The notes under the pieces were generated by a model. It saw only the letters and a program-made list of their open reading frames with translations. It had not been told where the DNA came from and did no database searches. A stretch of 64,000 nucleotides of DNA from Obrimoposthia wandeli (lineage: Eukaryota). This document shows, one piece after another, positions 25,006 through 38,650 of the stretch. Location: contig CDROCS010003952.1 of the NCBI GenBank assembly GCA_977020255.1, positions 1 through 64,000 on the forward strand, written 5' to 3'. Both the position numbers and the translations under genes were made by a program. Every line of letters starts with the position of its first letter. The stretch's first letter is position 1.

Positions 25006-25270
25006 CGATTTGATCCTAGGTTTGTAATAAACATGTCGGATAAAAACCACTTAATGTTTTATCCGTAATTTGAAAGTCATTTATGGTGCTTTCCTATCTG
25101 TAATGTATAAGTAATCGTATCTGTAATGCATAAGTATAGTTGTACTTGCAGCACTATTATTCCTTAAGTTGAAAGACTAATTCATGCCTATTTTTAAAAT
25201 TTGGGAGTGAGAATGCAATAAAAGATAAGTCGTGTTAGTGAGGGCGTTGTGTGAGCGAGGATTATTGAAA

Positions 25271-25307
25271 TAACCAAGCTGCCACATGATTAATGACAGC
25301 TTGGTTA
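25271..25307 (-). terminator. Hairpin after the cus operon
   Basis: TAACCAAGCTG...CAGCTTGGTTA. Confidence 0.6.
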
Positions 25308-25325
25308 CAGGAGGATTAATGGGAA

Positions 25326-26084
25326 TTAGTCACATTTAATACGATATTCTTTATGACTCTTCTTGGTATGTTGCTTAATTTCCTTAAGCACTGTTTTAAC
25401 TTCTTTTTTACCGTTTGCTGTTTGTAATTGGGTAAACAGATCGGTTAATTTTTCAATGCCTTGCTGATACCCCTGATGCTGCATGTGAGTTTTGTGGTCC
25501 ATGCCGGGCATGTTTTCCATTTGGCTATGATCCATCGCTGGCATATTTTTATTCATGGCTGACATGTCGTGATCCATCGCCGCCATATCGTGATTCATAG
25601 CTGGCATGTCTTTATTCATCGCGGACATGTCATGATCCATAGCAGGCATATCCTTCTTCATGCCTGCCATGTCATGATTCATCGCAGGCATATCCTTCTT
25701 CATGCCAGCCATGTCATGATTCATAGCAGGCATATCCTTCTTCATGCCAGTCATGTCATGATTCATCGCAGGCATGTCCTTCTTCATGTCAGCCATGTCA
25801 TGATTCATCGCAGGCATGTCGTGATTCTTCAGCTTTACCGGAACCTCATTTTTTGCCTTCATTGAATTGGCAAGTAACTTAGTTACCTGAGCTTGCATGG
25901 CCGTGGCATCATTACGTTTAAATGCCGCGACATAGGATTTTAAGTCGTCATTCATCTCTTTCATCATGCCGCTTAACACGGTATCTTCACAGTGCGTTTC
26001 GCCATCATGTGCGAATACTGGCAGACTGAGTGCGGCAGACAGTACTAGCGATCCTGCTATCGTTTTTGTCATTTTGTTTAACAT
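25326..26084 (-). CDS. Secreted cytochrome b562-like four-helix protein with inserted Met/His heptad-repeat array
   Basis: Signal peptide VFA|H; LSGMMKEMNDDLK, EVPVKL, YQQGIEKL, KKSHKEYR resemble b562 segments; last gene of the cusCBA operon. Confidence 0.7.
   Translation of the reverse strand: MLNKMTKTIAGSLVLSAALSLPVFAHDGETHCEDTVLSGMMKEMNDDLKSYVAAFKRNDATAMQAQVTKLLANSMKAKNEVPVKLKNHDMPAMNHDMADMKKDMPAMNHDMTGMKKDMPAMNHDMAGMKKDMPAMNHDMAGMKKDMPAMDHDMSAMNKDMPAMNHDMAAMDHDMSAMNKNMPAMDHSQMENMPGMDHKTHMQHQGYQQGIEKLTDLFTQLQTANGKKEVKTVLKEIKQHTKKSHKEYRIKCD
25530..25823 (-). repeat. 14 tandem 21-bp units encoding [H/K]DMxxM[N/K/D] with a 42-bp higher-order period
   Basis: aa 88-185: HDMPAMN HDMADMK KDMPAMN HDMTGMK ... 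KNMPAMD. Confidence 0.95.
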
Positions 26085-26113: not shown

Positions 26114-29100
26114 TTAATTGTCTGTTGTTAATTTTTTATTCGAGGCTGCGGTACTGTCATCTTCCTCGGTCATGATCGATTTCAAGCTGAACTGTTTCCA
26201 CAGGTAGAACATGGCCGGTAGTACCAATAAGGTTAGCACTAATGCTGAAGCCATACCGCCAATCATTGGCGCGGCAATACGTTGCATCACTTGTGAGCCA
26301 GTACCTTCACCAAACATGATGGGCACAAGACCGATGATGACAGTGGCAACGGTCATCATTACCGGACGTACCCGCAAACCAGCCCCTTCCATTATCGCTT
26401 GACGTAATTTTGCTCTGGTTAGTTGCCCAGCTGCAATGGCAGCATCGAGAGATTGATTTAAATAAACCAACATGATAACCCCAATTTCAACGGCAACACC
26501 AGCGAGGGCGATGAAGCCAACGCCGACGGCAATCGAAAAATTATAGTTGAGCAAGTAAAGTAACCAGATACCACCGATCATCGCCAGCGGTAAAGTACCT
26601 AAAATCAGTAATACTTCACCGACACGTCGAAATGCCAAATACAGCAGTAAGACGATAATACTGAGTGTTGCAGGGATCACCACTGTTAAGGTGTCTTTAG
26701 CGCGCTGCATATATTCATATTGACCAGACCAAGTAATTGAATAACCCGCAGGTAAGTCGAGCTGTTCAGCCACGGCCTGTTGCGCGTCCAGCACATAAGA
26801 ACCAAGATCACGGCCAGCGATATCAACATAAATCCAGCCATTGGGGCGGGCATTTTCAGTTTTTATCATCGGTGCGCCATCTTCGACATAAACGTTGGCT
26901 ACATCGCTTAATGCAATACGAGCACCTTGCGGTGTAATTATCGGCAGCAACTTCATTTGCTCTATACTATCGCGATACGCTTGCGGATAACGCACATTAA
27001 CAGGATAACGCTCTAAGCCTTCAATGGTTTGGGTGACATTCATCCCGCCAACTGCGGTGGATACTACGGCTTGCACATCAGCAATGTTAAGACCATAACG
27101 TGCAGCTTTTGCCCGCTGTATATCGACCTTAACATAACGACCACCGGCGACTCGCTCAGCATAAGCAGAGGTTGTACCTTCAACGTTAAGCAATATTTTT
27201 TCTATGTCTTTACCAATTTTTTCTATTTCAGCTAGTTTCTCACCTGCTACCTTAATACCGATAGGGGTTTTGATACCTGTGGCTAACATGTCGGTACGTG
27301 TTTTGATTGGCATTACCCAGGCGTTTGTGACACCAGGGAACTTGATCAATGAGTCTAATTCTTCGCGTAAACCTGCAGATGTCATGCCGTCTCGCCACTG
27401 ATCTTTGGGTTTTAAACTGATGAAGGTTTCTATCATCGTTAATGGCGCGGCGTCTGTTGCTGTTTCTGCACGTCCAGCTTTGCCCCAAACACGTTCTACT
27501 TCAGGCACTGTTTTGATCAATTTATTGGTTTGTTGCAGCAATTCTCTGGCTTTACCGATACTGATCCCCGGATAGGTAGTCGGCATGTACATTAGGTCAC
27601 CTTCATCAAGAGGTGGAATAAATTCACTGCCGATCTTGTTTACCGGATAAAAACCGACCGCAAGTAAACCCGCAACCAGAAATAACATCAGCAAGGGGGC
27701 TTTTAAACTGAATTTTAATAGCGGTCGATACAGGGCAATAAGACCACGATTAATCGGATTTTTGTGTTCTGGTAGTACCTTACCGCGAATGAAGTAACCC
27801 ATCAGAATCGGCACTAACGTAACAGCGAGTCCGGCAGCCGCTGCCATTGAATAAGTTTTGGTAAAGGCGAGGGGAGAAAACATCTTGCCTTCTTGTCCTT
27901 GCAGTGCAAATACTGGCACGAAACTGAAGGTAATGATCAGCAGCGAAAAGAACAGTGCTGGACCGACTTCGGATGCAGCTTTGCTGATCACCTGCCAACG
28001 ATTTTCATCCGTCAACGGTGTTTTTTCCATGTGTTTATGCACATTTTCAACCATCACGATAGCACCGTCGACCATAGCACCAATGGCGATAGCGATACCG
28101 CCTAATGACATGATGTTGGCATTAATACCCTGCCAAGACATGACGATAAACGCCACCAAAATACCAACGGGTAAACTGACTAATACCACGAGCGAACTGC
28201 GAATGTGGAACAGAAATACTGCGCACACGACAATCACCACAAGAAACTCTTCAAATAGTTTTTCGTAGAGGTTTTCTACGGCATTATCAATCAGGGTAGA
28301 ACGATCGTAAGTCGGAACAATTTCAACACCTTCCGGTAATGATCCCTGCAACGTTTTAAGTTTAGCCTTGACGGCTGCAATGACATCACGGGCATTTTCG
28401 CTGTAACGCATGACGATGATACCGCCAACAACTTCACCTTCACCATTAAGCTCCGATACACCACGGCGCATTTGCGGTCCGGTGACTATGTCTGCCACAT
28501 CACCGAGTAATAATGGCGTGCCAGTTGGACTCAGTTTTAGCGGGATGTTTTTCAGGTCATCAATCGAACTGATATAACCATTGGCGCGTACCATATATTC
28601 CGCTTCAGCCATTTCGATTACACTGGCACCAGCTTCTTGGTTGCCCTGTTGTATCGCTTTACTAATGGCAGACAATGGAATTTGGTAACTGCTTAATTTA
28701 TCTGGGTCAACACTGATCTGATATTGTTTGACCATGCCGCCGACCGTCGCCACTTCCGATACACCCGGTACGGTTTGCAGTTCATACTTTAAGAACCAAT
28801 CTTGTAAACTGCGTAATTCGCTAAGGTCATGATTACCGCTGGTATCGGTTAACGCATAGGAATAGACCCAGCCGACGCCTGTTGCATCGGGTCCTAATGC
28901 TGGTTTGGCTGTGCTAGGCAGATTCGGGGTTACCTGAGAAAGGTATTCAAGTACTCGAGACCGAGCCCAGTACATATCAGTACCATCTTCAAAAATGACA
29001 TAAACATAAGAGTCGCCAAAGAAGGAGAAACCACGCACTGTTTTTGCTCCAGGTACTGACAGCATCGCGGTCGTTAGCGGGTAGGTGACTTGGTCTTCAA

Positions 29101-29281
29101 CTACTTGTGGCGCTTGCCCTGGATAACTGGTTTTAATGATCACCTGTACATCAGAGAGATCTGGGATCGCGTCGATCGGGGTATTTTTGACTACAAAGCT
29201 GCCGTAGACAATAATAATAAAGGTCGCTAACAAGACTAGCATCCGATTGTGGATCGACCATTCAATAATGCGTTTGATCAT
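26114..29281 (-). CDS. cusA: Cu(I)/Ag(I) RND efflux permease
   Basis: IDAIPDLSDVQVIIKTSYPGQAP, DLMYMPTT, WVMPIK, MSLGGIAIAIGAMVDGAIVMVEN. Confidence 0.97.
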   Translation of the reverse strand: MIKRIIEWSIHNRMLVLLATFIIIVYGSFVVKNTPIDAIPDLSDVQVIIKTSYPGQAPQVVEDQVTYPLTTAMLSVPGAKTVRGFSFFGDSYVYVIFEDGTDMYWARSRVLEYLSQVTPNLPSTAKPALGPDATGVGWVYSYALTDTSGNHDLSELRSLQDWFLKYELQTVPGVSEVATVGGMVKQYQISVDPDKLSSYQIPLSAISKAIQQGNQEAGASVIEMAEAEYMVRANGYISSIDDLKNIPLKLSPTGTPLLLGDVADIVTGPQMRRGVSELNGEGEVVGGIIVMRYSENARDVIAAVKAKLKTLQGSLPEGVEIVPTYDRSTLIDNAVENLYEKLFEEFLVVIVVCAVFLFHIRSSLVVLVSLPVGILVAFIVMSWQGINANIMSLGGIAIAIGAMVDGAIVMVENVHKHMEKTPLTDENRWQVISKAASEVGPALFFSLLIITFSFVPVFALQGQEGKMFSPLAFTKTYSMAAAAGLAVTLVPILMGYFIRGKVLPEHKNPINRGLIALYRPLLKFSLKAPLLMLFLVAGLLAVGFYPVNKIGSEFIPPLDEGDLMYMPTTYPGISIGKARELLQQTNKLIKTVPEVERVWGKAGRAETATDAAPLTMIETFISLKPKDQWRDGMTSAGLREELDSLIKFPGVTNAWVMPIKTRTDMLATGIKTPIGIKVAGEKLAEIEKIGKDIEKILLNVEGTTSAYAERVAGGRYVKVDIQRAKAARYGLNIADVQAVVSTAVGGMNVTQTIEGLERYPVNVRYPQAYRDSIEQMKLLPIITPQGARIALSDVANVYVEDGAPMIKTENARPNGWIYVDIAGRDLGSYVLDAQQAVAEQLDLPAGYSITWSGQYEYMQRAKDTLTVVIPATLSIIVLLLYLAFRRVGEVLLILGTLPLAMIGGIWLLYLLNYNFSIAVGVGFIALAGVAVEIGVIMLVYLNQSLDAAIAAGQLTRAKLRQAIMEGAGLRVRPVMMTVATVIIGLVPIMFGEGTGSQVMQRIAAPMIGGMASALVLTLLVLPAMFYLWKQFSLKSIMTEEDDSTAASNKKLTTDN

Positions 29282-30747
29282 TACATGTCACCTTCTACGT
29301 CGTCATCATCAAAGTCTAACCAATCTAGCGCGTCATCACTCTCTGTCTGATCCATTGTCGAATGATCCATAGCCATAGCCATTGCTGGTTGCTGTGGGGA
29401 TTGTTGTTGCGAAGAGACCGGATCGATACGATTAAAGTCTGCTGTTAAGCTCGATTCGGAATCAATCAGGAATTGAGCACTGGTCACGACCTTATTTCCC
29501 GCGGTTAAACCCGTTATTACTTCAACATAACCCGCTGATTCTCTTCCTATCGTAACCCTGACAGATTGATATTGACCGTCGCCTTTGGCAAGTACTATCC
29601 GATCAAAATTGCCAGCACGGATCACGGCTTCGCGAGGTACCTGTAAGCTGGTGGACTGAGTTTGACTGAGCAATTTCAGCTTGGCGAACATATTAGGTTT
29701 TAACTGTTTATCTTCATTACTAAATTTAACACGGACTTTCAGTGTTCGAGTCGCTGCGTTTAATTCTGGATAGATGTAATCAACCTCGCCATGCCAAGTT
29801 CTGCCTGGGAAGCTATCAAGTTGCATTTCACCCTTATCGCCGACTTGTACTAAACCTGCTTGCGATTCAAATACTTCAGCTTGCAGCCAGATCTCATCTA
29901 ACTGTCCCGCTTCGATGATCTGTGCGGCTGGTGTGATGTAAGCGCCTTCACGTACGCCTAACTTGGTAATAAAACCAGACTCAGGTGCGAAGACCGTGAC
30001 ATTCTGTTTGGCTTTGCGCTTGCTGCTAATCTGACGGATCTGTTCTTTACTGATACCGAGTGCAGACAAACGGTTTTTTGATGATGAAATTAAGGTTTTA
30101 TTGCCGATACGTAATGCATTGAGCAACTCTTCTTGGGCTTTAACTAATTCAGGGGAATAAAGTGATAGTAGTTTTTGGCCCTTCGTTACTTGCTCTCCTT
30201 CTTCTTTGATGTAGAGCTTTTCTATCCAACCAGATACACGGCTATTAATTTGCCATAGCGTATGTTGATTAAACTCGAGCAGACCCACGGTATTGATTTG
30301 TGGGATGAAGGGACGCTGGCTGACGGTTTGAGTGCGCACGCCTAAGTTGTTTTCTACGCGTGGAGAAATGGTGACTAACCCTGCATCACTTGCAGCTGCA
30401 GATGATTCGCCGTAGACAGGGACGAGATCCATGCCCATCGGTGATTTACCGGGCTCATCGCGACGATAATTGGCATCCATCGGAGCGACCCAATACAGCG
30501 GTTCTTTCTCTGCTGACGCTGACACTGGAACATCGGGATAAACTGGCACGAGATCCATGCCCATCGGTGATTTACCGGGTTCATCACGGCGATAGTTAGC
30601 GTCCATTGGTGCTACCCAATAAAGTGGTGTTAGTTCCGCGGCTTTAGCCGTACTATTTGTTAAGTTATCAGCTTGATAATTTGTAAACCAAACGCCTGCG
30701 GTCAACCCGAGGGCAAGAGTAATTGAACTTGCTATGATTGTTTTCAT
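29281..30747 (-). CDS. cusB: RND membrane-fusion protein with two N-terminal heavy-metal-binding repeats
   Basis: Two identical PLYWVAPMDANYRRDEPGKSPMGMDLVPVY units; MFP core; TAATG overlap with the cusA start. Confidence 0.93.
   Translation of the reverse strand: MKTIIASSITLALGLTAGVWFTNYQADNLTNSTAKAAELTPLYWVAPMDANYRRDEPGKSPMGMDLVPVYPDVPVSASAEKEPLYWVAPMDANYRRDEPGKSPMGMDLVPVYGESSAAASDAGLVTISPRVENNLGVRTQTVSQRPFIPQINTVGLLEFNQHTLWQINSRVSGWIEKLYIKEEGEQVTKGQKLLSLYSPELVKAQEELLNALRIGNKTLISSSKNRLSALGISKEQIRQISSKRKAKQNVTVFAPESGFITKLGVREGAYITPAAQIIEAGQLDEIWLQAEVFESQAGLVQVGDKGEMQLDSFPGRTWHGEVDYIYPELNAATRTLKVRVKFSNEDKQLKPNMFAKLKLLSQTQSTSLQVPREAVIRAGNFDRIVLAKGDGQYQSVRVTIGRESAGYVEVITGLTAGNKVVTSAQFLIDSESSLTADFNRIDPVSSQQQSPQQPAMAMAMDHSTMDQTESDDALDWLDFDDDDVEGDM
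30412..30627 (-). repeat. Duplicated 90-bp metal-binding module in cusB (30538-30627 and 30412-30501)
   Basis: Protein-identical; 15 of 30 codons differ, all synonymously. Confidence 0.92.
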
Positions 30748-30755
30748 GTCGACCT

Positions 30756-32012
30756 CTATAATGCTTGAAAATAACGAATGCGCGCTAATGTTTTTAGACC
30801 CTGGAAATGCAACTGATGATATTCAAGCTCTAGGGCCTGCTCATCCATAAACGCCTTAATTACCTGCTCAAAGCTATTGGTATTGAGCTGATAACCTTGT
30901 AAAGATGCTTCGGTATTACGTTTAGCATGAGGAAGTAGGGTGTCTTGATAGCGTTGTAATCGAGATTCCGTATTCAGGAAATTAGCGATAGCACCGTTTA
31001 AAATGCCATTGAATTTAATCAACAGCAGATCTTTCTCGGCTTTTTTAATGCCCTTGCCCTGTGTGGCAGCGATGACAACTTGGTCTTGGCGATTACCGGT
31101 AAACAAGGGGATATTCATGGTGACAGAACCACTGAGTAAATCACTGCGCGCGGATCCTGTTGTCATGTCTAATGCTTCTCGGTGGCCGTAACCCACATCG
31201 ACTTTAAAGGCCGGTTTATACGATTCATTGGCTATTTCGATGGTGTTTTCAGCTACATCAATTGCTTGCTGCGCGGCGAGTACTTGGGGATGGTTTGCGA
31301 GCAATTTATAATGCACAACTTGACCTTGCTTGGCATAATCACGGCTTGCTTGCCACTCTGGAATTTGTGGATCAAGTTGGCCGAAAGCTTGTGAACCAAT
31401 CCAAGAAAGCAACTGGCCACGTAATGCTTGTTCTTGTTGGGCGAAGGCTGCAATTCTATCGTCGAATTTAGCCAATTCGAGTTCGGCATTAATAAGGTCT
31501 TGATTTTGCTTGTAACCAAGCTCAAATTGACGGTAGAGGTTATCTACATTCAACTTAAATAAGGCTTGGTTTTTTTGCAAAATTTCTTGAGCAAGTTTGG
31601 TAAAGCGAATATCAAACCAAAGTTCTCTGATCTTTAGTTTTAGCTCTGCTTGACGGTTAGCTGACAGCAGTACGCTTTGCTGCGCTTGCAGGTTGAAATT
31701 GTTGGCGTTTAACGTGAGTGTATCGCCGCGAGAAAATTGTTGTGACATACCAATACTAAACTGCGTCATCGGATCGTCAGTTAACGAGAAGCTGTCTATT
31801 GGTACATTCGCTAAGCCGAGTTTTATCATCGGATCAGTCAGTTGTGATGAACTGATCGCTTGCGCTTTAAACCGGGTCTGCTGAGCAGTGTAGATCTGGG
31901 CTGTTGGATCGCTTTGCAGGGCGAAGTTTTCCGCTGCAGATAGCGTTAACAGCTGAGCATTAACATTAAATGTAAATAACGTTAATAGCCCAAAATAAAT
32001 TTTGGATGGCAT
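30756..32012 (-). CDS. cusC: TolC-family outer-membrane factor of the Cus system
   Basis: Signal peptide; DPMIKLGLANVPIDSFS..DPMTQ..GMSQQF; position upstream of cusB. Confidence 0.85.
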   Translation of the reverse strand: MPSKIYFGLLTLFTFNVNAQLLTLSAAENFALQSDPTAQIYTAQQTRFKAQAISSSQLTDPMIKLGLANVPIDSFSLTDDPMTQFSIGMSQQFSRGDTLTLNANNFNLQAQQSVLLSANRQAELKLKIRELWFDIRFTKLAQEILQKNQALFKLNVDNLYRQFELGYKQNQDLINAELELAKFDDRIAAFAQQEQALRGQLLSWIGSQAFGQLDPQIPEWQASRDYAKQGQVVHYKLLANHPQVLAAQQAIDVAENTIEIANESYKPAFKVDVGYGHREALDMTTGSARSDLLSGSVTMNIPLFTGNRQDQVVIAATQGKGIKKAEKDLLLIKFNGILNGAIANFLNTESRLQRYQDTLLPHAKRNTEASLQGYQLNTNSFEQVIKAFMDEQALELEYHQLHFQGLKTLARIRYFQAL

Positions 32013-32050: not shown

Positions 32051-32446
32051 TCAACCAATAAGAGGGGGACGATATAAGCTTTCTGGATGTTGTTCAGGGA
32101 GAGGGGCAGGGAAATACAATACAGTCGTTGTTTGCTCTTGGCTGGCAACGATTAATAGATTCGTGCTGATAAAAGGCAGTGAACTGGCGGTGCTACAATC
32201 ACCATAATTGCACATGTCACAATTACTTTCGCTCATCGCGGTAAGATGATTGCTGGTTGACGTATCATCCATTTGACAAAGATTGTCTGTGTTTTCGTCT
32301 AAATTGCCTTGCATCATGTCCGGCATCATTTGCATGTCACACGGAATATTTGCAGACATAACGTGGCTGTTCATTGCCTGAAGAGGTAATGAAAATGAGT
32401 TTATTAATAATAATAAAACCAAAGCCAAAGCGCGCATGAAAGACAT
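32051..32446 (-). CDS. Secreted Cys/Met-rich leader protein ending LYRPPLIG (CzcI/CopL-like)
   Basis: Signal peptide, PCDMQMMPDMM, CDMC, C-terminal YRPP; stop 38 nt before cusC. Confidence 0.7.
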   Translation of the reverse strand: MSFMRALALVLLLLINSFSLPLQAMNSHVMSANIPCDMQMMPDMMQGNLDENTDNLCQMDDTSTSNHLTAMSESNCDMCNYGDCSTASSLPFISTNLLIVASQEQTTTVLYFPAPLPEQHPESLYRPPLIG

Positions 32447-32603: not shown

Positions 32604-32972
32604 ATGCTAATACCAAGGCGTGTGATTAAGGTGATCTGTCTGTTGCTAGTGAGTATTGTACTCTCGAGCCAGCTTGCCTATGCGCCACTTTCTGCTCATG
32701 AACGGTCAAATAACATTGCAGCCATCGATAATGCTATGCATTGTGATGCCGGGCAGATGATGGCTAACAACGCAAAAGCTAACTGCTGTGATTCTTTGGA
32801 AAGTAATATTGAAAATCAATGTTGTTTCTCCAGTGCGACCACAAGTTATGCCATTATTTCATTATCCTCTTTGAATGCACGTCAGCCTTACACACTAAGC
32901 CTGATTAACCGTGATCCATCTAAAGCTAGTTTTACCATCCCTGCTCTCTTGTATCGACCTCCCATCGTTTAA
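32604..32972 (+). CDS. Secreted Cys-rich leader protein ending LYRPPIV
   Basis: Signal peptide, MHC, two CC pairs, C-terminal YRPP. Confidence 0.65.
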   Translation: MLIPRRVIKVICLLLVSIVLSSQLAYAPLSAHERSNNIAAIDNAMHCDAGQMMANNAKANCCDSLESNIENQCCFSSATTSYAIISLSSLNARQPYTLSLINRDPSKASFTIPALLYRPPIV

Positions 32973-33176
32973 TATTCCTTGTACTACACCACACATACGT
33001 TTGTTGCTTAATCTATGACTATCGATATAAATAGCAATATTGATATCGACATAGATGAGGGAACATAGATTAAAAATGTGCTATCGATGTCAAAAATAGA
33101 CCGATTGAACTAATCTATAAGCAAAGTGTGCTGGCTATCCAAATTAAGTAATACTTCGAAATTTAAGGAATTTAAG

Positions 33177-33617
33177 ATGAAAACGATTATCCAATTGATT
33201 GCCATATTATCACTCACATTTAGTGCTGTTGTATTCGCCAAACCAACGATTGAGTTATACAAGTCACCGTCATGTGGTTGCTGTGTAGCATGGGCAGATA
33301 TCATGGAAGAAAAAGGCTATAAAGTGAATGTGCATCATCAACGTGATTGGTCAGCGGTGCAGAAGAAGTTCGGCATGCCGAATAGTTTACAGTCTTGCCA
33401 CACGGCTGTTGTTGACGGTTATATGATTGAAGGGCATGTGCCAGAAAAGGATGTAGCACGTTTACTTAGCGAACGACCGAGTGATATTACCGGTCTTTCT
33501 GCTCCCGGCATGCCGCAGCATTCCCCTGGTATGGCTGCACCAGGCCAGGACTATAAAGACTTTAACGTTGTTGCGTTTGATAAAAATGGCAACTTGAGCT
33601 TATATAAAAAGTACTAA
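33177..33617 (+). CDS. copG: DUF411/CopG periplasmic copper protein
   Basis: YKSPSCGCC..W, SCHTA, IEGHVP, GLSAPGMP.HSPGM; ATG 33177 with AAGGA RBS. Confidence 0.88.
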   Translation: MKTIIQLIAILSLTFSAVVFAKPTIELYKSPSCGCCVAWADIMEEKGYKVNVHHQRDWSAVQKKFGMPNSLQSCHTAVVDGYMIEGHVPEKDVARLLSERPSDITGLSAPGMPQHSPGMAAPGQDYKDFNVVAFDKNGNLSLYKKY

Positions 33618-33654: not shown

Positions 33655-33988
33655 GCCTTAATATTTCCATCATCTTTCCATGATTTCCCCACAAGCTCTC
33701 CAACATATCTAAGCCATATCCACACCACGCTACAGGGCGTAATTTAGTGACTGTTGAAATAGATGGCATTACCTATAAGGAAGTAATCAAAAGAGGTTGT
33801 GGACAGACTCTTTACAGAGCGCTATCTTATCTAATACAAATAAATCACAACATAAGTGATAAAAGGATGAAGCCAAGGTTTTTAACCACAGGCTTTACAA
33901 GAATGACAGACGACTTAATAACCGGGTGATTGTTCGAAAAAATACCCTGCTTATAATTTTGGGTAAGAATTTAAAGGGAAGTTTATAT

Positions 33989-36900
33989 ATGATGAGCAGA
34001 AATACTAAGCATCACGGTCTCTATCGTTCAGAGTTTGAACACGATAGCTGTGGTATCGGCTTTGTTACCAATCTAAAAGGTAAAAAGTCGCACGATATTA
34101 TTCAGAACGCACTTACTATGCTGGAATGCATGGAACACCGAGGCGGTACTGGCTTTGATGTTAAAAGTGGTGATGGTGCAGGAATATTGATCCAGATCCC
34201 GCATGATTTTTTCAAAGCAGAAGCCAGTGAACTTGGCTTCCAGTTACCTCCTGAAGGCGAATACGGCGTAGGGATGATCTTCTTCCCTAACGATCCCGAG
34301 CAAGCGGAGAAAAGCCGTGAGGTTTTTAATGCTGCGATTGAAGAACTTGGTTTAAGCATACTCGCTTATCGTTCGGTACCAACGGATAATTCGATGTTGG
34401 GGGTAGCCTCGTTTGACTCTGAGCCTCAGATTGAACAGGTATTTATCCAAAAACCGAATGATCTTACTCAACAGGTTTTTGAACGTAAGTTATTTGTGTT
34501 ACGTAAATACACGTCACACAAGCTTAACAGAACCATTGCTAAAGAAACCGATGAGTTTTATATCGCTTCTATGTCCTCGCGTACCATAGTGTATAAAGGG
34601 CAATTCACCACCGCACAGGTGAAACAATACTACCTCGATTTGCAAAATGAACGCGTTACGACTGGCCTCGCCATGTTCCACTCCCGTTTTTCAACCAATA
34701 CATTCCCGGCATGGCGTCGAGCACAACCGTTCCGCTATTTATCTCACAACGGTGAAATTAATACCGTTCAGGGCAATGTCAATTGGATGAACGCGCGCGA
34801 AGCGATGTTTAAATCGATAAACTTCAGTGACGCCGAACTGAAAATGATCAACCCGGTATGTAACCGTGGTAATTCAGATTCTGCAAACCTTGATATGGCG
34901 ATTGAGCTGCTTGTGCTCAGCGGACGTCCACTGGCTCAGGTCATGATGATGATGGTGCCGGAAGCATGGCAATCTCAGGAAGACATGGATCCGGTTAAGC
35001 GCGCTTTTTATGAGTATTACGCTTGCATCATGGAACCATGGGATGGCCCAGCTTCTATTTCGTTCACCGATGGTAAAATGATTGGCGCCACACTCGATCG
35101 TAATGGCTTACGTCCTTCGCGTTACTTGCTCACCAATGATGGCACGTTGATCATGGGTTCTGAAACGGGCACCATCTGTATCGATCAATCGACTGTCGTA
35201 GAAAAAGGTCGCTTGCAACCGGGCAAGATATTTATTGCCGATTTGGAACAAGGCCGCATTATCAGTGATGATGAGGTTAAAAATGGTATTTGCTCTGCAC
35301 AACCGTATGAACGATGGCTGAGTGAAAACAAAATACTGTTGAACGAGCTGCCAACGCCAGCAGCATCTGTCAGTCAAGCTGAGTTACCAAACCTGAGAAA
35401 AATTCAAAAAGCGTTTGGCTACAGCAGTGAAGATCTTAACCTGATTTTGGCGCAAATGGTCGACAGCAGCAAAGAGCCGCTTGGTGCTATGGGGACAGAT
35501 ACCCCGTTAGCGGTACTTTCCGATCGCCCGCAGCAGTTATCTCACTATTTTAAACAGTTGTTTGCTCAGGTAACTAATCCGCCGATAGATCCGATCCGAG
35601 AAGAGTTGGTGATGTCTTTGCGTGGTTATGTCGGCAACTCGCACAACTTATTGACAGAGACGCCTGCGCATTGTCACAAGATTGAAATTGACCAGCCAGT
35701 GCTAACCAATGAAGAGTTTAAAAAGCTGCAGCAAATTGACCATAATCATCTGCAGTCTAAAACGATTGATATTACCTTTAGAGCCACTGGTAAAGAGGGG
35801 GCTCTGAAGGCCGCACTTGATCGTATCTGTTTGTATGCCAAAGATGCGGTTAATAATGGTTATGCGTTGTTGCTATTGAGTGACCGTAACATCGACACCG
35901 ATCATGCCGCGATACCGTCGGTACTGGCGACCGCTGCGATCCATCACTATTTGATCCGCGAAGGTTTACGTGCCAAAGCCGATCTTATCCTCGAAGTTGC
36001 CGATATTCGTGAAACGCATCACTTTGCCACTGTCCTCGGTTTTGGCGCAGCAGCGGTTAACCCTTATCTGGCACTTGAAAGTTTGTACAGCTTGCGTGAT
36101 GACGGCGTTATTAATCCTAAATTCAGTAATGACGTCGTTGTTGCTAAGTATATCAAAGCCGTTGGTAGTGGTTTGTTGAAGATCTTCTCGAAAATGGGGA
36201 TTTCAACATTACAGTCTTACCAGGGTGCTCAGATATTTGAAGCGCTGGGTATCAACAGTGATGTTATTGATAATTACTTCACCGGTACGGTAAGCCGCAT
36301 CGAAGGTATTGGCCTAGATCAAATCGCGACAGAGGCGTTAATGCGCCACCGTGACGGTTTCTTGCCAGAAGACCGTATTGCCGCTGATGACCTGTTGAAG
36401 ACTGGTGGCGAATACGCTTGGCGTCATGACGGGGAAAAGCACCTGTTTAACCCAACTACTATTCGCTTGCTGCAGCATTCTACAGCGAGTAACAATACTG
36501 CACAGTTTAAAGAATATGCAAAAGTCGTTGATACACAGAGTAAAAATGCATTTACTTTACGTGGTTTGCTCGAATTTAGTGCCGACCATAAATCTATCCC
36601 ATTAGATGAAGTGGAGCCGATCGAAAATATTTTCAAACGTTTTGCTTCCGGTGCTATGTCCTTTGGTTCTATTTCTTGGGAAGCGCACACTACGCTCGCC
36701 ATTGCCATGAATCGTATTGGCGGTAGAAGTAACAGTGGTGAGGGCGGTGAAGATCCGATTCGCTTTACGCCGATGGAAAATGGCGATTCGATGAAGTCGC
36801 GGATCAAGCAGGTTGCTTCTGGCCGTTTTGGGGTAACCAGTCATTACCTGACGAATGCAGACGAATTACAAATTAAAATGGCGCAAGGTGCCAAGCCGGG

Positions 36901-38650
36901 CGAGGGTGGCCAATTACCTGGGCATAAGGTTGATGCCTGGATTGGTCGTACACGTGGCTCTACGCCTGGTGTAGGACTCATTTCACCGCCGCCGCATCAT
37001 GACATCTATTCTATCGAAGATTTGTCACAGCTCATATTTGACCTTAAAAACGCTAACCGTGAAGCGCGGGTAAATGTGAAACTGGTATCTGAAGCGGGTG
37101 TGGGTACTATCGCATCGGGTGTGTGTAAAGGTTATGCCGACGTAGTTCTGATTGCTGGCCATGATGGCGGTACTGGTGCTTCACCACTGAGCTCGATCAA
37201 GCATGCGGGTCTGCCTTGGGAACTTGGCCTCGCTGAAACCCATCAAACACTGGTGCGTAATCATTTACGTAGCCGTATTACGGTGCAAACCGATGGGCAG
37301 TTAAAAACACCACGCGATCTGGCCATAGCGACCTTGTTGGGTGCGGAAGAATACGGTATGGCGACAACTGCGTTAGTGGTTGAAGGCTGTATCATGATGC
37401 GTAAATGTCACTTAAATACTTGCCCTGTCGGCATTGCGACACAAGACCGAGAGTTGCGTGGTCGCTTTAGTGGTCAGGCTGATATTTTGGTTAACTTCTT
37501 TACCATGATGGCAGAAGGCTTACGCGAAATCATGGCAGAGCTAGGCTTTAAAACCATTAATGACATGGTTGGACAAACCCAGTACTTGAGAACGCGTACC
37601 GATGTCGATCATTGGAAATACAAGGGTGTTGATCTCTCGCCGTTGTTGCACAAAGAACAATGTGCAGCCGACGAAACCCTATACTGTTCTAAAGAACAGA
37701 AACACCTGATTGACGATATTATTGACCGTCGCATGATGGAAGACGCCAAGGATGCACTGGAAAATCAAACGCCAGTTAATCTTGAGTACGATGTAGTGAA
37801 TACCGATCGTACTATTGGTGCCATGCTGTCTAACGAGATCTCGAAGAAATATGACGCTGACGGTCTGCCGGAAAATACCATCAAGGTTAAGTTTAACGGT
37901 TCGGCAGGTCAGAGTTTTGGTTGCTTCTCAGCTAAGGGCCTTCGCTTTGAGCTTGAAGGTGATGCGAATGACTATTTTGGTAAGGGATTATCCGGTGCCC
38001 ATTTGGTTGTTTACCCACCTAAAGTGGCCACTTTTGAAGCCAGTAAAAATATCGTCATTGGTAACGTTGCCTTGTTTGGTGCAACCTCGGGTAAAGCCTT
38101 TATTCGCGGTATTGCCGGTGAACGTTTCTGCGTACGTAACTCAGGTGCTACCACGGTTGTTGAAGGTGTGGGCGATCACGGTTGTGAATATATGACGGGT
38201 GGTAAGGCTGTTATTCTTGGTCAGACCGGGCGTAATTTCGCTGCGGGTATGTCAGGTGGTATTGCTTATGTTCTAGATGACAACAATGATTTAGCCAGCA
38301 AATGCAACATGGAAATGGTGCAGCTTGAAATACTTGAAAACGTTAATGATATTGCTGAACTAAAAGCCCTCATTACCGAGCACAAAGACAATACTCAATC
38401 GGATGTGGCAGAAGACTTGCTCGCCGACTGGGACAGTGCCGTTAAACGTTTTGTAAAAGTCATGCCTGTTGATTTCAAAAAAATGCAACAGTATATGGAC
38501 CAAGCACGTAGCACGGGTAAATTTGAAACTGAATATGATGTGGCAGTTTCCCGAAGCATTCTGACATGCATCTTGGAAATTGGCAGCTCAAAGCGCCTGG
38601 AGCTGAATAGAGACAATATTATGGGAAATCCAAATCGATTTATGAAGTAG
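33989..38650 (+). CDS. gltB: Glutamate synthase large subunit (3' end probably frameshifted near 38550; true stop about 38606-38610)
   Basis: EHDSCGIGF, HRGG, HNGEINT, EPWDGPA, KQVASGRFG, GGTGASP, GEGVGDHGCEYMTGG-like GXGXG domain; ATG 33989. Confidence 0.96.
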   Translation: MMSRNTKHHGLYRSEFEHDSCGIGFVTNLKGKKSHDIIQNALTMLECMEHRGGTGFDVKSGDGAGILIQIPHDFFKAEASELGFQLPPEGEYGVGMIFFPNDPEQAEKSREVFNAAIEELGLSILAYRSVPTDNSMLGVASFDSEPQIEQVFIQKPNDLTQQVFERKLFVLRKYTSHKLNRTIAKETDEFYIASMSSRTIVYKGQFTTAQVKQYYLDLQNERVTTGLAMFHSRFSTNTFPAWRRAQPFRYLSHNGEINTVQGNVNWMNAREAMFKSINFSDAELKMINPVCNRGNSDSANLDMAIELLVLSGRPLAQVMMMMVPEAWQSQEDMDPVKRAFYEYYACIMEPWDGPASISFTDGKMIGATLDRNGLRPSRYLLTNDGTLIMGSETGTICIDQSTVVEKGRLQPGKIFIADLEQGRIISDDEVKNGICSAQPYERWLSENKILLNELPTPAASVSQAELPNLRKIQKAFGYSSEDLNLILAQMVDSSKEPLGAMGTDTPLAVLSDRPQQLSHYFKQLFAQVTNPPIDPIREELVMSLRGYVGNSHNLLTETPAHCHKIEIDQPVLTNEEFKKLQQIDHNHLQSKTIDITFRATGKEGALKAALDRICLYAKDAVNNGYALLLLSDRNIDTDHAAIPSVLATAAIHHYLIREGLRAKADLILEVADIRETHHFATVLGFGAAAVNPYLALESLYSLRDDGVINPKFSNDVVVAKYIKAVGSGLLKIFSKMGISTLQSYQGAQIFEALGINSDVIDNYFTGTVSRIEGIGLDQIATEALMRHRDGFLPEDRIAADDLLKTGGEYAWRHDGEKHLFNPTTIRLLQHSTASNNTAQFKEYAKVVDTQSKNAFTLRGLLEFSADHKSIPLDEVEPIENIFKRFASGAMSFGSISWEAHTTLAIAMNRIGGRSNSGEGGEDPIRFTPMENGDSMKSRIKQVASGRFGVTSHYLTNADELQIKMAQGAKPGEGGQLPGHKVDAWIGRTRGSTPGVGLISPPPHHDIYSIEDLSQLIFDLKNANREARVNVKLVSEAGVGTIASGVCKGYADVVLIAGHDGGTGASPLSSIKHAGLPWELGLAETHQTLVRNHLRSRITVQTDGQLKTPRDLAIATLLGAEEYGMATTALVVEGCIMMRKCHLNTCPVGIATQDRELRGRFSGQADILVNFFTMMAEGLREIMAELGFKTINDMVGQTQYLRTRTDVDHWKYKGVDLSPLLHKEQCAADETLYCSKEQKHLIDDIIDRRMMEDAKDALENQTPVNLEYDVVNTDRTIGAMLSNEISKKYDADGLPENTIKVKFNGSAGQSFGCFSAKGLRFELEGDANDYFGKGLSGAHLVVYPPKVATFEASKNIVIGNVALFGATSGKAFIRGIAGERFCVRNSGATTVVEGVGDHGCEYMTGGKAVILGQTGRNFAAGMSGGIAYVLDDNNDLASKCNMEMVQLEILENVNDIAELKALITEHKDNTQSDVAEDLLADWDSAVKRFVKVMPVDFKKMQQYMDQARSTGKFETEYDVAVSRSILTCILEIGSSKRLELNRDNIMGNPNRFMK

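Follow-up and report, generated by a model that had tools for sequence, protein, structure and literature searches.

A cytochrome b562-family protein with a Met/His heptad array, encoded as the last gene of a Moritella cus operon

The stretch of DNA analysed here (the window) is 64,000 nucleotides of contig CDROCS010003952.1, positions 1 to 64,000, from an assembly deposited under Obrimoposthia wandeli (GCA_977020255.1). Its minus strand carries a copper and silver efflux operon of the Cus type, the last gene of which, here called X, encodes a 252-amino-acid (aa) protein of the cytochrome b562 family with a long Met/His array in one loop; the host of X is a cold-water Moritella. X has an ATG start codon at 26084, with a ribosome site (AAGGA) 8 nt 5' of it. 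The open reading frame (ORF) of cusA, stop codon included, ends at 26114, leaving a gap of 29 nt. The features of X, all on the minus strand, are as follows (AF2, AlphaFold2 model; pLDDT, its predicted local distance difference test score).

25326-26084, minus: X, 252-aa secreted cytochrome b562-family protein with Met/His array (ORF; two Pfam b562 half-matches; 128.9-bit match after deletion of the repeats)
26010-26084, minus: signal peptide, residues 1-25 (read from the sequence; hydrophobic N-terminus, alignable with the leader of the b562 precursor)
25989-26009, minus: mature N-terminus, H26-x4-H31-C32 (His26, His31, and Cys32 in 36/36 Moritella-type proteins)
25821-25979, minus: helices 1-2, residues 36-88 (AF2 pLDDT >90; profile alignment)
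25962-25964, minus: Met41, aligned with Met7 of b562 (profile alignment; invariant in 98/98 proteins)
25533-25826, minus: 14 Met/His heptads, residues 87-184, in the helix 2-3 loop (repeats of period 21 x 14.3; pLDDT <50)
25473-25532, minus: degenerate but conserved end of the array, residues 185-204, D-H-S-x-M ... T-H-M-Q-H, running into helix 3
25344-25496, minus: helices 3-4, residues 197-247 (AF2 model; profile alignment)
25353-25355, minus: His244, aligned with His102 of b562 (profile alignment)
25332-25334, minus: Cys251, penultimate residue, paired with Cys32 (conservation of the pair)

With its N-terminal signal peptide, which matches the b562 precursor leader in alignment, X is predicted to be secreted to the periplasm; by the AXA rule, cleavage would fall at LPVFA/HDGETHC (VFA/H). 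The mature N-terminus H26-x4-H31-C32 is a possible copper site, a possible disulfide partner of Cys251, or both. Cys32 and Cys251 are the only cysteines. A c-type heme in X was rejected: there is no CXXCH, and the two cysteines lie 9 residues before Met41 and 7 after His244. An earlier note on this DNA, written by a model from the letters alone, had described a secreted protein with 14 Met/His heptads (28 Met), Cys32 and Cys251, beginning 29 nt after cusA, and the ORF confirms all of this.

The whole of X matches the Pfam Cytochrom_B562 family (PF07361) at 16.6 bits (E 0.013). Searched separately, its two halves each match, colinearly and at 19.3 and 19.1 bits, with residues 38-86 on profile positions 3-48 (E 0.0018) and residues 203-248 on positions 54-102 (E 0.002). 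Among the close family members of X, 29/38 match Cytochrom_B562, the one family to recur; for the shortest-array member (P0026) the match spans the full length (E 2.5e-5, 25.3 bits). An exhaustive search with the family profile over 1.8 billion representatives returned 106 proteins, many of them only 132-161 aa long and matching by their N- and C-terminal stretches: these are array-less relatives, and they are the nearest ones (up to 1e-28 with the family profile). A set of 54 members, comprising array-less relatives and a few short-array proteins, was aligned; 52 of the 54 match Pfam b562 (best E 2e-16), and a profile of the set finds the Escherichia coli b562 precursor at E 2.1e-10 in a single colinear alignment. 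When residues 88-199 are removed, X scores 128.9 bits against a hidden Markov model (HMM) of 48 array-less relatives drawn from the same set, as one domain covering positions 2-145 of 145; the best of 2000 shuffles scored 15.5 bits. The match to b562 thus survives removal of the repeats, which the earlier note had named as the test of its own claim, here in a stricter form. Single-sequence searches of the two halves of X against the PDB gave nothing meaningful; only profiles reach b562.

In the profile alignment to E. coli b562, the invariant Met of the family falls on Met7, P-L-K on PPKL (the turn with which Pro82 of X aligns), Y-Q-x-G on FRHG, and K-S-H-K-x-F/Y-R/K on AYHQKYR, which contains His102. 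The alignment bears out the E. coli motifs on which the earlier note relied, as it does the placement of the array in the helix 2-3 loop and of Met41 and His244 on the heme ligands Met7 and His102. Met41 and His244 would then hold a heme b. In the known b562 structure (PDB 256B), the heme end of the bundle is where helix 1 begins, helix 4 ends, and helices 2 and 3 are joined by their loop; since these are the parts that carry the array and both cysteines, all three would flank the heme pocket.

The structural models point the same way. In the AF2 model, helices at residues 36-56, 60-88, 197-222, and 226-247 have high pLDDT and are packed as a four-helix bundle. Foldseek results with the full model of X are dominated by the disordered array, so a trimmed model or a short-array orthologue was used instead. 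By VIA-align, array-trimmed X matches b562 chains with Z 9.7-10.6 over ~103 of 106 residues. By Foldseek, the top Swiss-Prot matches of the short-array orthologue are without exception soluble cytochrome b562, and its top PDB ranks are mostly b562 variants (probability 0.97-1.0, template modelling score ~0.7 by target, identity 15-21 %), so that the structural match foreseen in the earlier note was also obtained. By sequence profile and by model, then, X belongs to the b562 family, as a divergent member with an array in the helix 2-3 loop. Separately, the helices 3-4 profile of the family (residues 192-252, 25329-25511, minus) gives a slightly better alignment to residues 6-36 of E. coli b562, its helices 1-2, than to its own counterpart, which hints at an internal duplication of a helix hairpin.

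Tandem Repeats Finder describes the array as 14.3 copies of a 21-nt period (25527-25827), with an 84-nt super-period of 88 % matches. The heptads have the form N/K/D-H/K-D/N-M-x-x-M and are in perfect register, position 2 of each being His or Lys and positions 4 and 7 Met; residues 87-184 (98 residues) hold 28 Met and 9 His, and the tail (185-204) a further 4 Met and 4 His. X as a whole has 39 Met, 29 of them in the middle segment. If the segment turned helical, the Met residues at i, i+3, and i+7 would share one face; the pLDDT below 50 suggests that without metal it is disordered. Array-bearing proteins show little or no variation at H186, S187, M189, M192, M195, H200, and H203.

Within the family the middle segment is between 16 and 105 residues long and holds between 4 and 29 Met, the window copy being the longest. 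The repeat unit depends on the clade: heptads in the window subclade, and D-H-S-x-M-based units of 8-16 residues elsewhere. More than 40 distinct sequences, belonging to two genera, have X with an intact frame, and all length differences are in-frame multiples of the repeat unit. The closest sequence to the window is that of Moritella dasanensis ArB 0140, with syntenic flanks at 93-98 % DNA identity; its X is 224 aa long, the result of two in-frame deletions relative to the window (63 and 21 nt), or exactly four heptads. The earlier note had called the array expandable, and such differences in heptad number between near-identical strains are what that word implies. No public unitig spans the array; two overlapping pieces match it with 0 differences, and the exact number of repeats rests on the assembly.

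Proteins that match the profile by the array only are CopA-type multicopper oxidases, CopB, and HMBD proteins. Arrays of this type bind Cu(I)/Ag(I) in CopA-type oxidases, in CopB, and in CusB/CusF tails, and by analogy the one in X would do likewise. This shared repeat would also account for the NCBI name of X orthologues, "copper resistance protein CopA." X as a CopA/PcoA multicopper oxidase was rejected, as it has no Cu-oxidase (cupredoxin) domains and owes the name to the Met/His repeat alone. A single clean origin of the array gets no support from the core tree, in which array-less and short-array members are interspersed and at least four changes are forced; since the tree is poorly resolved, with many forks unresolved, no claim is made for one insertion event.

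Conservation of the putative ligands and cysteines was compared in 98 proteins in three groups: 36 Moritella-type, 50 array-less or short-loop relatives, and 12 Psychromonas-type.

Moritella-type (n=36): Met41 36/36; His244 36/36; Cys pair 36/36; His26, His31, Met44, Pro82, and His200 each 36/36
Array-less or short-loop relatives (n=50): Met41 50/50; His244 50/50; Cys32 50/50; Cys251 49/50
Psychromonas-type (n=12): Met41 12/12; His244 4/12; Cys pair 8/12

In the set of close family members, 36/38 have both cysteines and the other two lack both; that the two are missing together fits either a disulfide clasp or a paired metal site.

The operon to which X belongs, again on the minus strand, comprises the following, from X outward and then on its 3' side.

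26114-29281, minus: cusA, Cu(I)/Ag(I) pump of the resistance-nodulation-division (RND) type, 1055 aa (TIGR00914, 1287 bits)
29281-30747, minus: cusB adaptor, its N-terminal HMBD motif present twice; no CusF domain
30756-32012, minus: cusC-type outer-membrane factor (PF02321, OEP family)
32051-32446, minus: CopL-like secreted Cys/Met protein, 131 aa, first gene of the operon (NF033807 CopL_fam, E 1.4e-5, below the cut-off)
25270-25308, minus: hairpin of 16 bp just 3' of the X stop codon, followed by a U-rich stretch (dG -24.2 kcal/mol, z = -7.1; 0/200 shuffles as stable)

The CusCBA genes carry the marks expected of such a system: a three-Met Cu(I) site in CusA, two HMBD motifs in CusB, and an outer-membrane factor. 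CusA is 59.5 % identical to that of E. coli and retains Met573/623/672, as well as the relay Met residues except M755. From gene order and spacing X is the last gene of a copL-like/cusC/cusB/cusA/X unit, and the hairpin beyond it is likely the operon terminator. No sign of a separate promoter was seen, in that promoter-like sites between cusA and X are no commoner than in shuffled sequence. Public runs that match the locus are of DNA or of unclear type; the one that may be RNA derives from a relative and covers cusA in part. The earlier note had described an operon without cusF, and with an E. coli CusF query no CusF domain was found in the operon or anywhere else in the window. As side observations, the window CusB ends in a short Met/His stretch and then an acidic tail, and the copL-like gene is divergent to another gene for a small secreted Cys/Met-rich protein (32604-32972, plus), both products ending in L-Y-R-P-P.

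Array-bearing relatives of X are found in Moritella, Psychromonas, and a genome named "Vibrio sp. 1-Bac 57" that groups with Psychromonas. The order cusC-cusB-cusA-X occurs in 5 Moritella and 7 Psychromonas genomes and in several metagenome contigs. Wherever a locus includes enough upstream DNA to tell, this order holds, and outside the operon the neighbouring genes vary; linkage to cusA, without which the earlier note would have fallen, is therefore conserved across two genera. The copL-like gene has the same position in the Moritella marina locus. In that locus (L001:8865-12895) the cus-X operon is followed directly by hemC, hemD, hemX, and hemY, which is probably coincidence, the neighbours in the window being different. 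In a Psychromonas-type locus (L002:8739-11370), X, here without an equivalent of His244, is followed by genes for a 180-aa secreted CXXCH protein with no Pfam match, DUF411/CopG, CopC, and CopD; DUF411/CopG is found 3' of X in several Psychromonas loci. In Psychromonas sp. KJ10-10 (L023:6-6216) the matches to cusB and cusA are in several frames and the N-terminal half of X is lost, so that the whole operon appears to be decaying.

The array-less relatives have a different neighbour. In three of them, in unrelated neighbourhoods, a gene for a membrane protein of the cytochrome b561 type (PF01292) lies directly 3', and altogether four relatives with the array absent or short adjoin a b561 gene, one of them in the order cusA-X-b561. 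This last is a metagenome contig (L025:3-2109) in which the 3' end of cusA, an X with a short His/Met loop, and b561 share a strand, separated by 30 and 19 nt; it is an intermediate between the b562/b561 pair and the arrangement in the window. Other array-less relatives occur away from any cus genes, and one (L005) is 3' of a CopL-like gene whose product ends in L-F-R-P-P. Taken together, this branch of the b562 family is tied both to copper and to a membrane b-type cytochrome, and most simply its members would be electron carriers.

One further locus (L007:191-8342) bears on the absence of CusF. It has a cusCBA set with a CusA 86 % identical to that of the window, and upstream of it, divergently oriented, an array-less X and b561 pair. 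Its CusB has a C-terminal CusF domain (PF11604, E 5e-17), followed by a Met/His array of its own. No CusF was found in array-bearing loci, the apparent matches being matches of Met repeats to the tail of the L007 CusB. An array-bearing X and CusF were never found together, the contrasting example, CusF beside an array-less X, being the single locus L007. From these relatives the array can be read as a movable module of the Cus system, carried either on a CusB-CusF fusion or on X.

X can be compared with several known systems. It resembles soluble cytochrome b562 (E. coli CybC, PF07361, PDB 256B) in being a secreted four-helix bundle with a core of ~106-120 residues, with Met and His at the heme-ligand positions, a Pro-rich turn after helix 2, and aromatic-x-x-Gly at the start of helix 3. 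It differs from b562 by ~100 additional residues of Met/His repeat between helices 2 and 3, by its place in a copper efflux operon, and by two terminal features, an H-x4-H-C extension at the N-terminus and a Cys at the C-terminus, which would probably clasp the heme end; identity is ~20 %. The array-less b562-like proteins with a Cys pair share with X the ligands, the Cys pair, and the N-terminal His motif, but they lack the array and are usually encoded in a two-gene module with b561 (PF01292, CybB family) rather than after cusA.

Like CusF (PF11604, in E. coli CusCFBA), X is small, secreted, encoded with the cus genes, and furnished with Met and His ligands. However, CusF is a five-stranded OB-type beta-barrel with one Cu(I) site (His/Met/Met/Trp, in the pattern His-x10-Met-x-Met/Trp), whereas X is modelled as all-helical, would have many sites, and probably has a heme. 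X is the last gene of its operon, and E. coli cusF lies between cusC and cusB. X is not itself a CusF: it has no PF11604 match, an all-helical model, and no similarity to E. coli CusF. In its repeated M-x-x-M, H-x-M, and D-H-S-x-M motifs, probably disordered without metal, the array resembles PcoE/SilE and the inserts of CueO, CopA/PcoA, and CopB, but PcoE/SilE-type arrays and those of the oxidases and CopB are free-standing or carried on cupredoxin or porin folds, and that of X on a b562-type bundle. The Met-rich segment of CueO feeds Cu(I) to a copper redox centre; in X the neighbouring centre would be a b-type heme.

Our best explanation of the whole, to which we give a probability of roughly 0.55, is that X belongs to a Cys-clasped branch of the b562 family and serves as a copper-capture accessory of CusCBA with a redox-active heme. 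X would be made from the same transcript as CusCBA, as a periplasmic four-helix bundle that has kept both ligands of the heme iron (Met41 and His244) and has the array in the loop between helices 2 and 3, at the heme end. The array would gather Cu(I)/Ag(I), perhaps roughly 7-10 ions per 14 heptads, and hand it on either to CusA or to CusB at its duplicated N-terminal sites, which is the job of CusF in E. coli. The heme would most likely make X redox-active, able to convert nearby copper between Cu(II) and Cu(I); the exchange of electrons could involve copper in the proximal array (D-H-S-x-M ... T-H-M-Q-H) or copper at the N-terminus with His26, His31, and Cys32. The favoured direction would be from Cu(II) to Cu(I), the substrate of the pump, for three reasons: the potential of E. 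coli b562 is near +170 mV, Cu(I) is stabilised by thioether ligands, and the pump takes Cu(I) alone. Electrons might be exchanged with the quinone pool through a membrane b561-type partner encoded elsewhere in the genome.

A number of observations weigh against this explanation. On family membership, X alone is under the Pfam gathering score (16.6 vs 30 bits), the Foldseek E-values of the b562 matches are only 0.1-0.3, and designed four-helix bundles score as high as b562 or higher in VIA-align, so that the fold match by itself is not specific. As to the heme, 8/12 Psychromonas-type proteins lack the His ligand and 4/12 the Cys pair, with the array and the position after cusA retained; loss of the His in part of this clade implies that the pump-linked role may not need heme. 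As to the redox chemistry, Met-bound Cu(I) is hard to oxidise by a heme near +170 mV, which leaves a single direction of electron flow plausible, and the 64-kb window contains no b561 gene.

The principal alternative is that X is a heme-free metal sponge or chaperone, its bundle a scaffold and its array a buffer for Cu(I)/Ag(I) like PcoE/SilE, with no redox role; Met41, His244, His31, Cys32, and Cys251 would then form a copper site of their own. Arrays of this type are common to non-heme copper proteins, the His/Cys/Met set at the end of the bundle could bind copper, and apo-b562-like bundles are stable, with designed bundles scoring equally in the fold search; several Psychromonas-type orthologues have, as noted, given up His244 and the Cys pair and kept array and operon position. 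We nevertheless consider it unlikely, though it is the rival that fares best: the two positions conserved throughout the family, its 50 array-less members included, are exactly the heme ligands of b562, and those array-less members, which have no obvious means of copper storage, adjoin a membrane b-type cytochrome, as would suit an electron carrier rather than a sponge.

Improbable to a further degree is a redox protein for a partner other than the pump (CopG/DUF411, a multicopper oxidase, or a cytochrome c), or a copper sensor whose array reports the copper of the periplasm, for which the place after cusA would give copper-dependent expression and nothing more. There is a DUF411/CopG gene 7 kb off in the window; genes for the CXXCH protein, CopG, CopC, and CopD are found 3' of X in Psychromonas-type loci; and array-less relatives are also found apart from cus genes. 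On the other hand, cusA is the sole constant neighbour of the array-bearing X, the other copper genes varying, and in L007, where X has no array, one is carried on a CusB-CusF fusion of the same pump system. A last reading would make X a product of misassembly or misannotation, or else a low-complexity ORF in decay and without function. It might be suspected from the lack of any single public contig spanning the repeat number and from the visible decay of the operon, X included, in Psychromonas sp. KJ10-10, but is effectively refuted by conservation, given the intact frame in the more than 40 sequences from both genera, the in-frame length differences, cores under clear constraint, and public unitigs that match the array exactly.

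X could, further, be the periplasmic end of a hitherto unrecognised, oxygen-independent copper redox relay running from the quinone pool through b561 and a b562-type heme protein to copper. This more specific proposal is tentative, and on present evidence doubtful. Such a relay would set the oxidation state of periplasmic copper for export by the RND pump, with the array as a landing pad for Cu(I) and a hand-over arm. In protein chemistry cytochrome b562 is among the proteins most used as models and as scaffolds for engineering, designed metal sites among them. Its natural function has, to our knowledge, never been settled; were the relay real, b562, at least in the Cys-clasped branch, would serve to exchange electrons with metal ions of the periplasm.

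The earlier note knew of no description of this combination, and the literature searched likewise yielded none: no account was found of a b562-type protein with a Met-rich copper array, with cusA, with copper resistance, or with b561 and copper, nor of cybC with copper. The b562 fold, Met/His copper arrays, and cus operons are each known; their combination, the place of X in the operon, and the link to b561 appear to be undescribed, and so, as far as we found, is the array-less b562-like/b561 module. In joining a predicted multi-site copper arm, a b562-type heme site, and a Cu/Ag pump, X offers a testable hypothesis for the function of one branch of the family. It is a candidate for a new class of accessory to Cus-type pumps that lack CusF, and suggests a possible oxygen-independent handling of Cu(II)/Cu(I) in cold-water or deep marine bacteria. 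The array is in addition a clean natural case of in-frame change in repeat number, which may tune capacity to environment. In practical terms, a systematic misnaming of X orthologues in databases ("CopA," "multicopper oxidase") is corrected.

Two further genes lie beyond the operon in the window. The DUF411 (CopG-type) gene 7 kb from X, for a periplasmic copper protein, is at 33126-33617 (plus), and the 1574-aa ORF at 33926-38650 (plus) encodes an ordinary glutamate synthase large subunit. In the best public run, which matches 25329-25476, the 3' end of X is present in two versions (1 and 11 differences over 148 nt), which points to two related strains in that sample.

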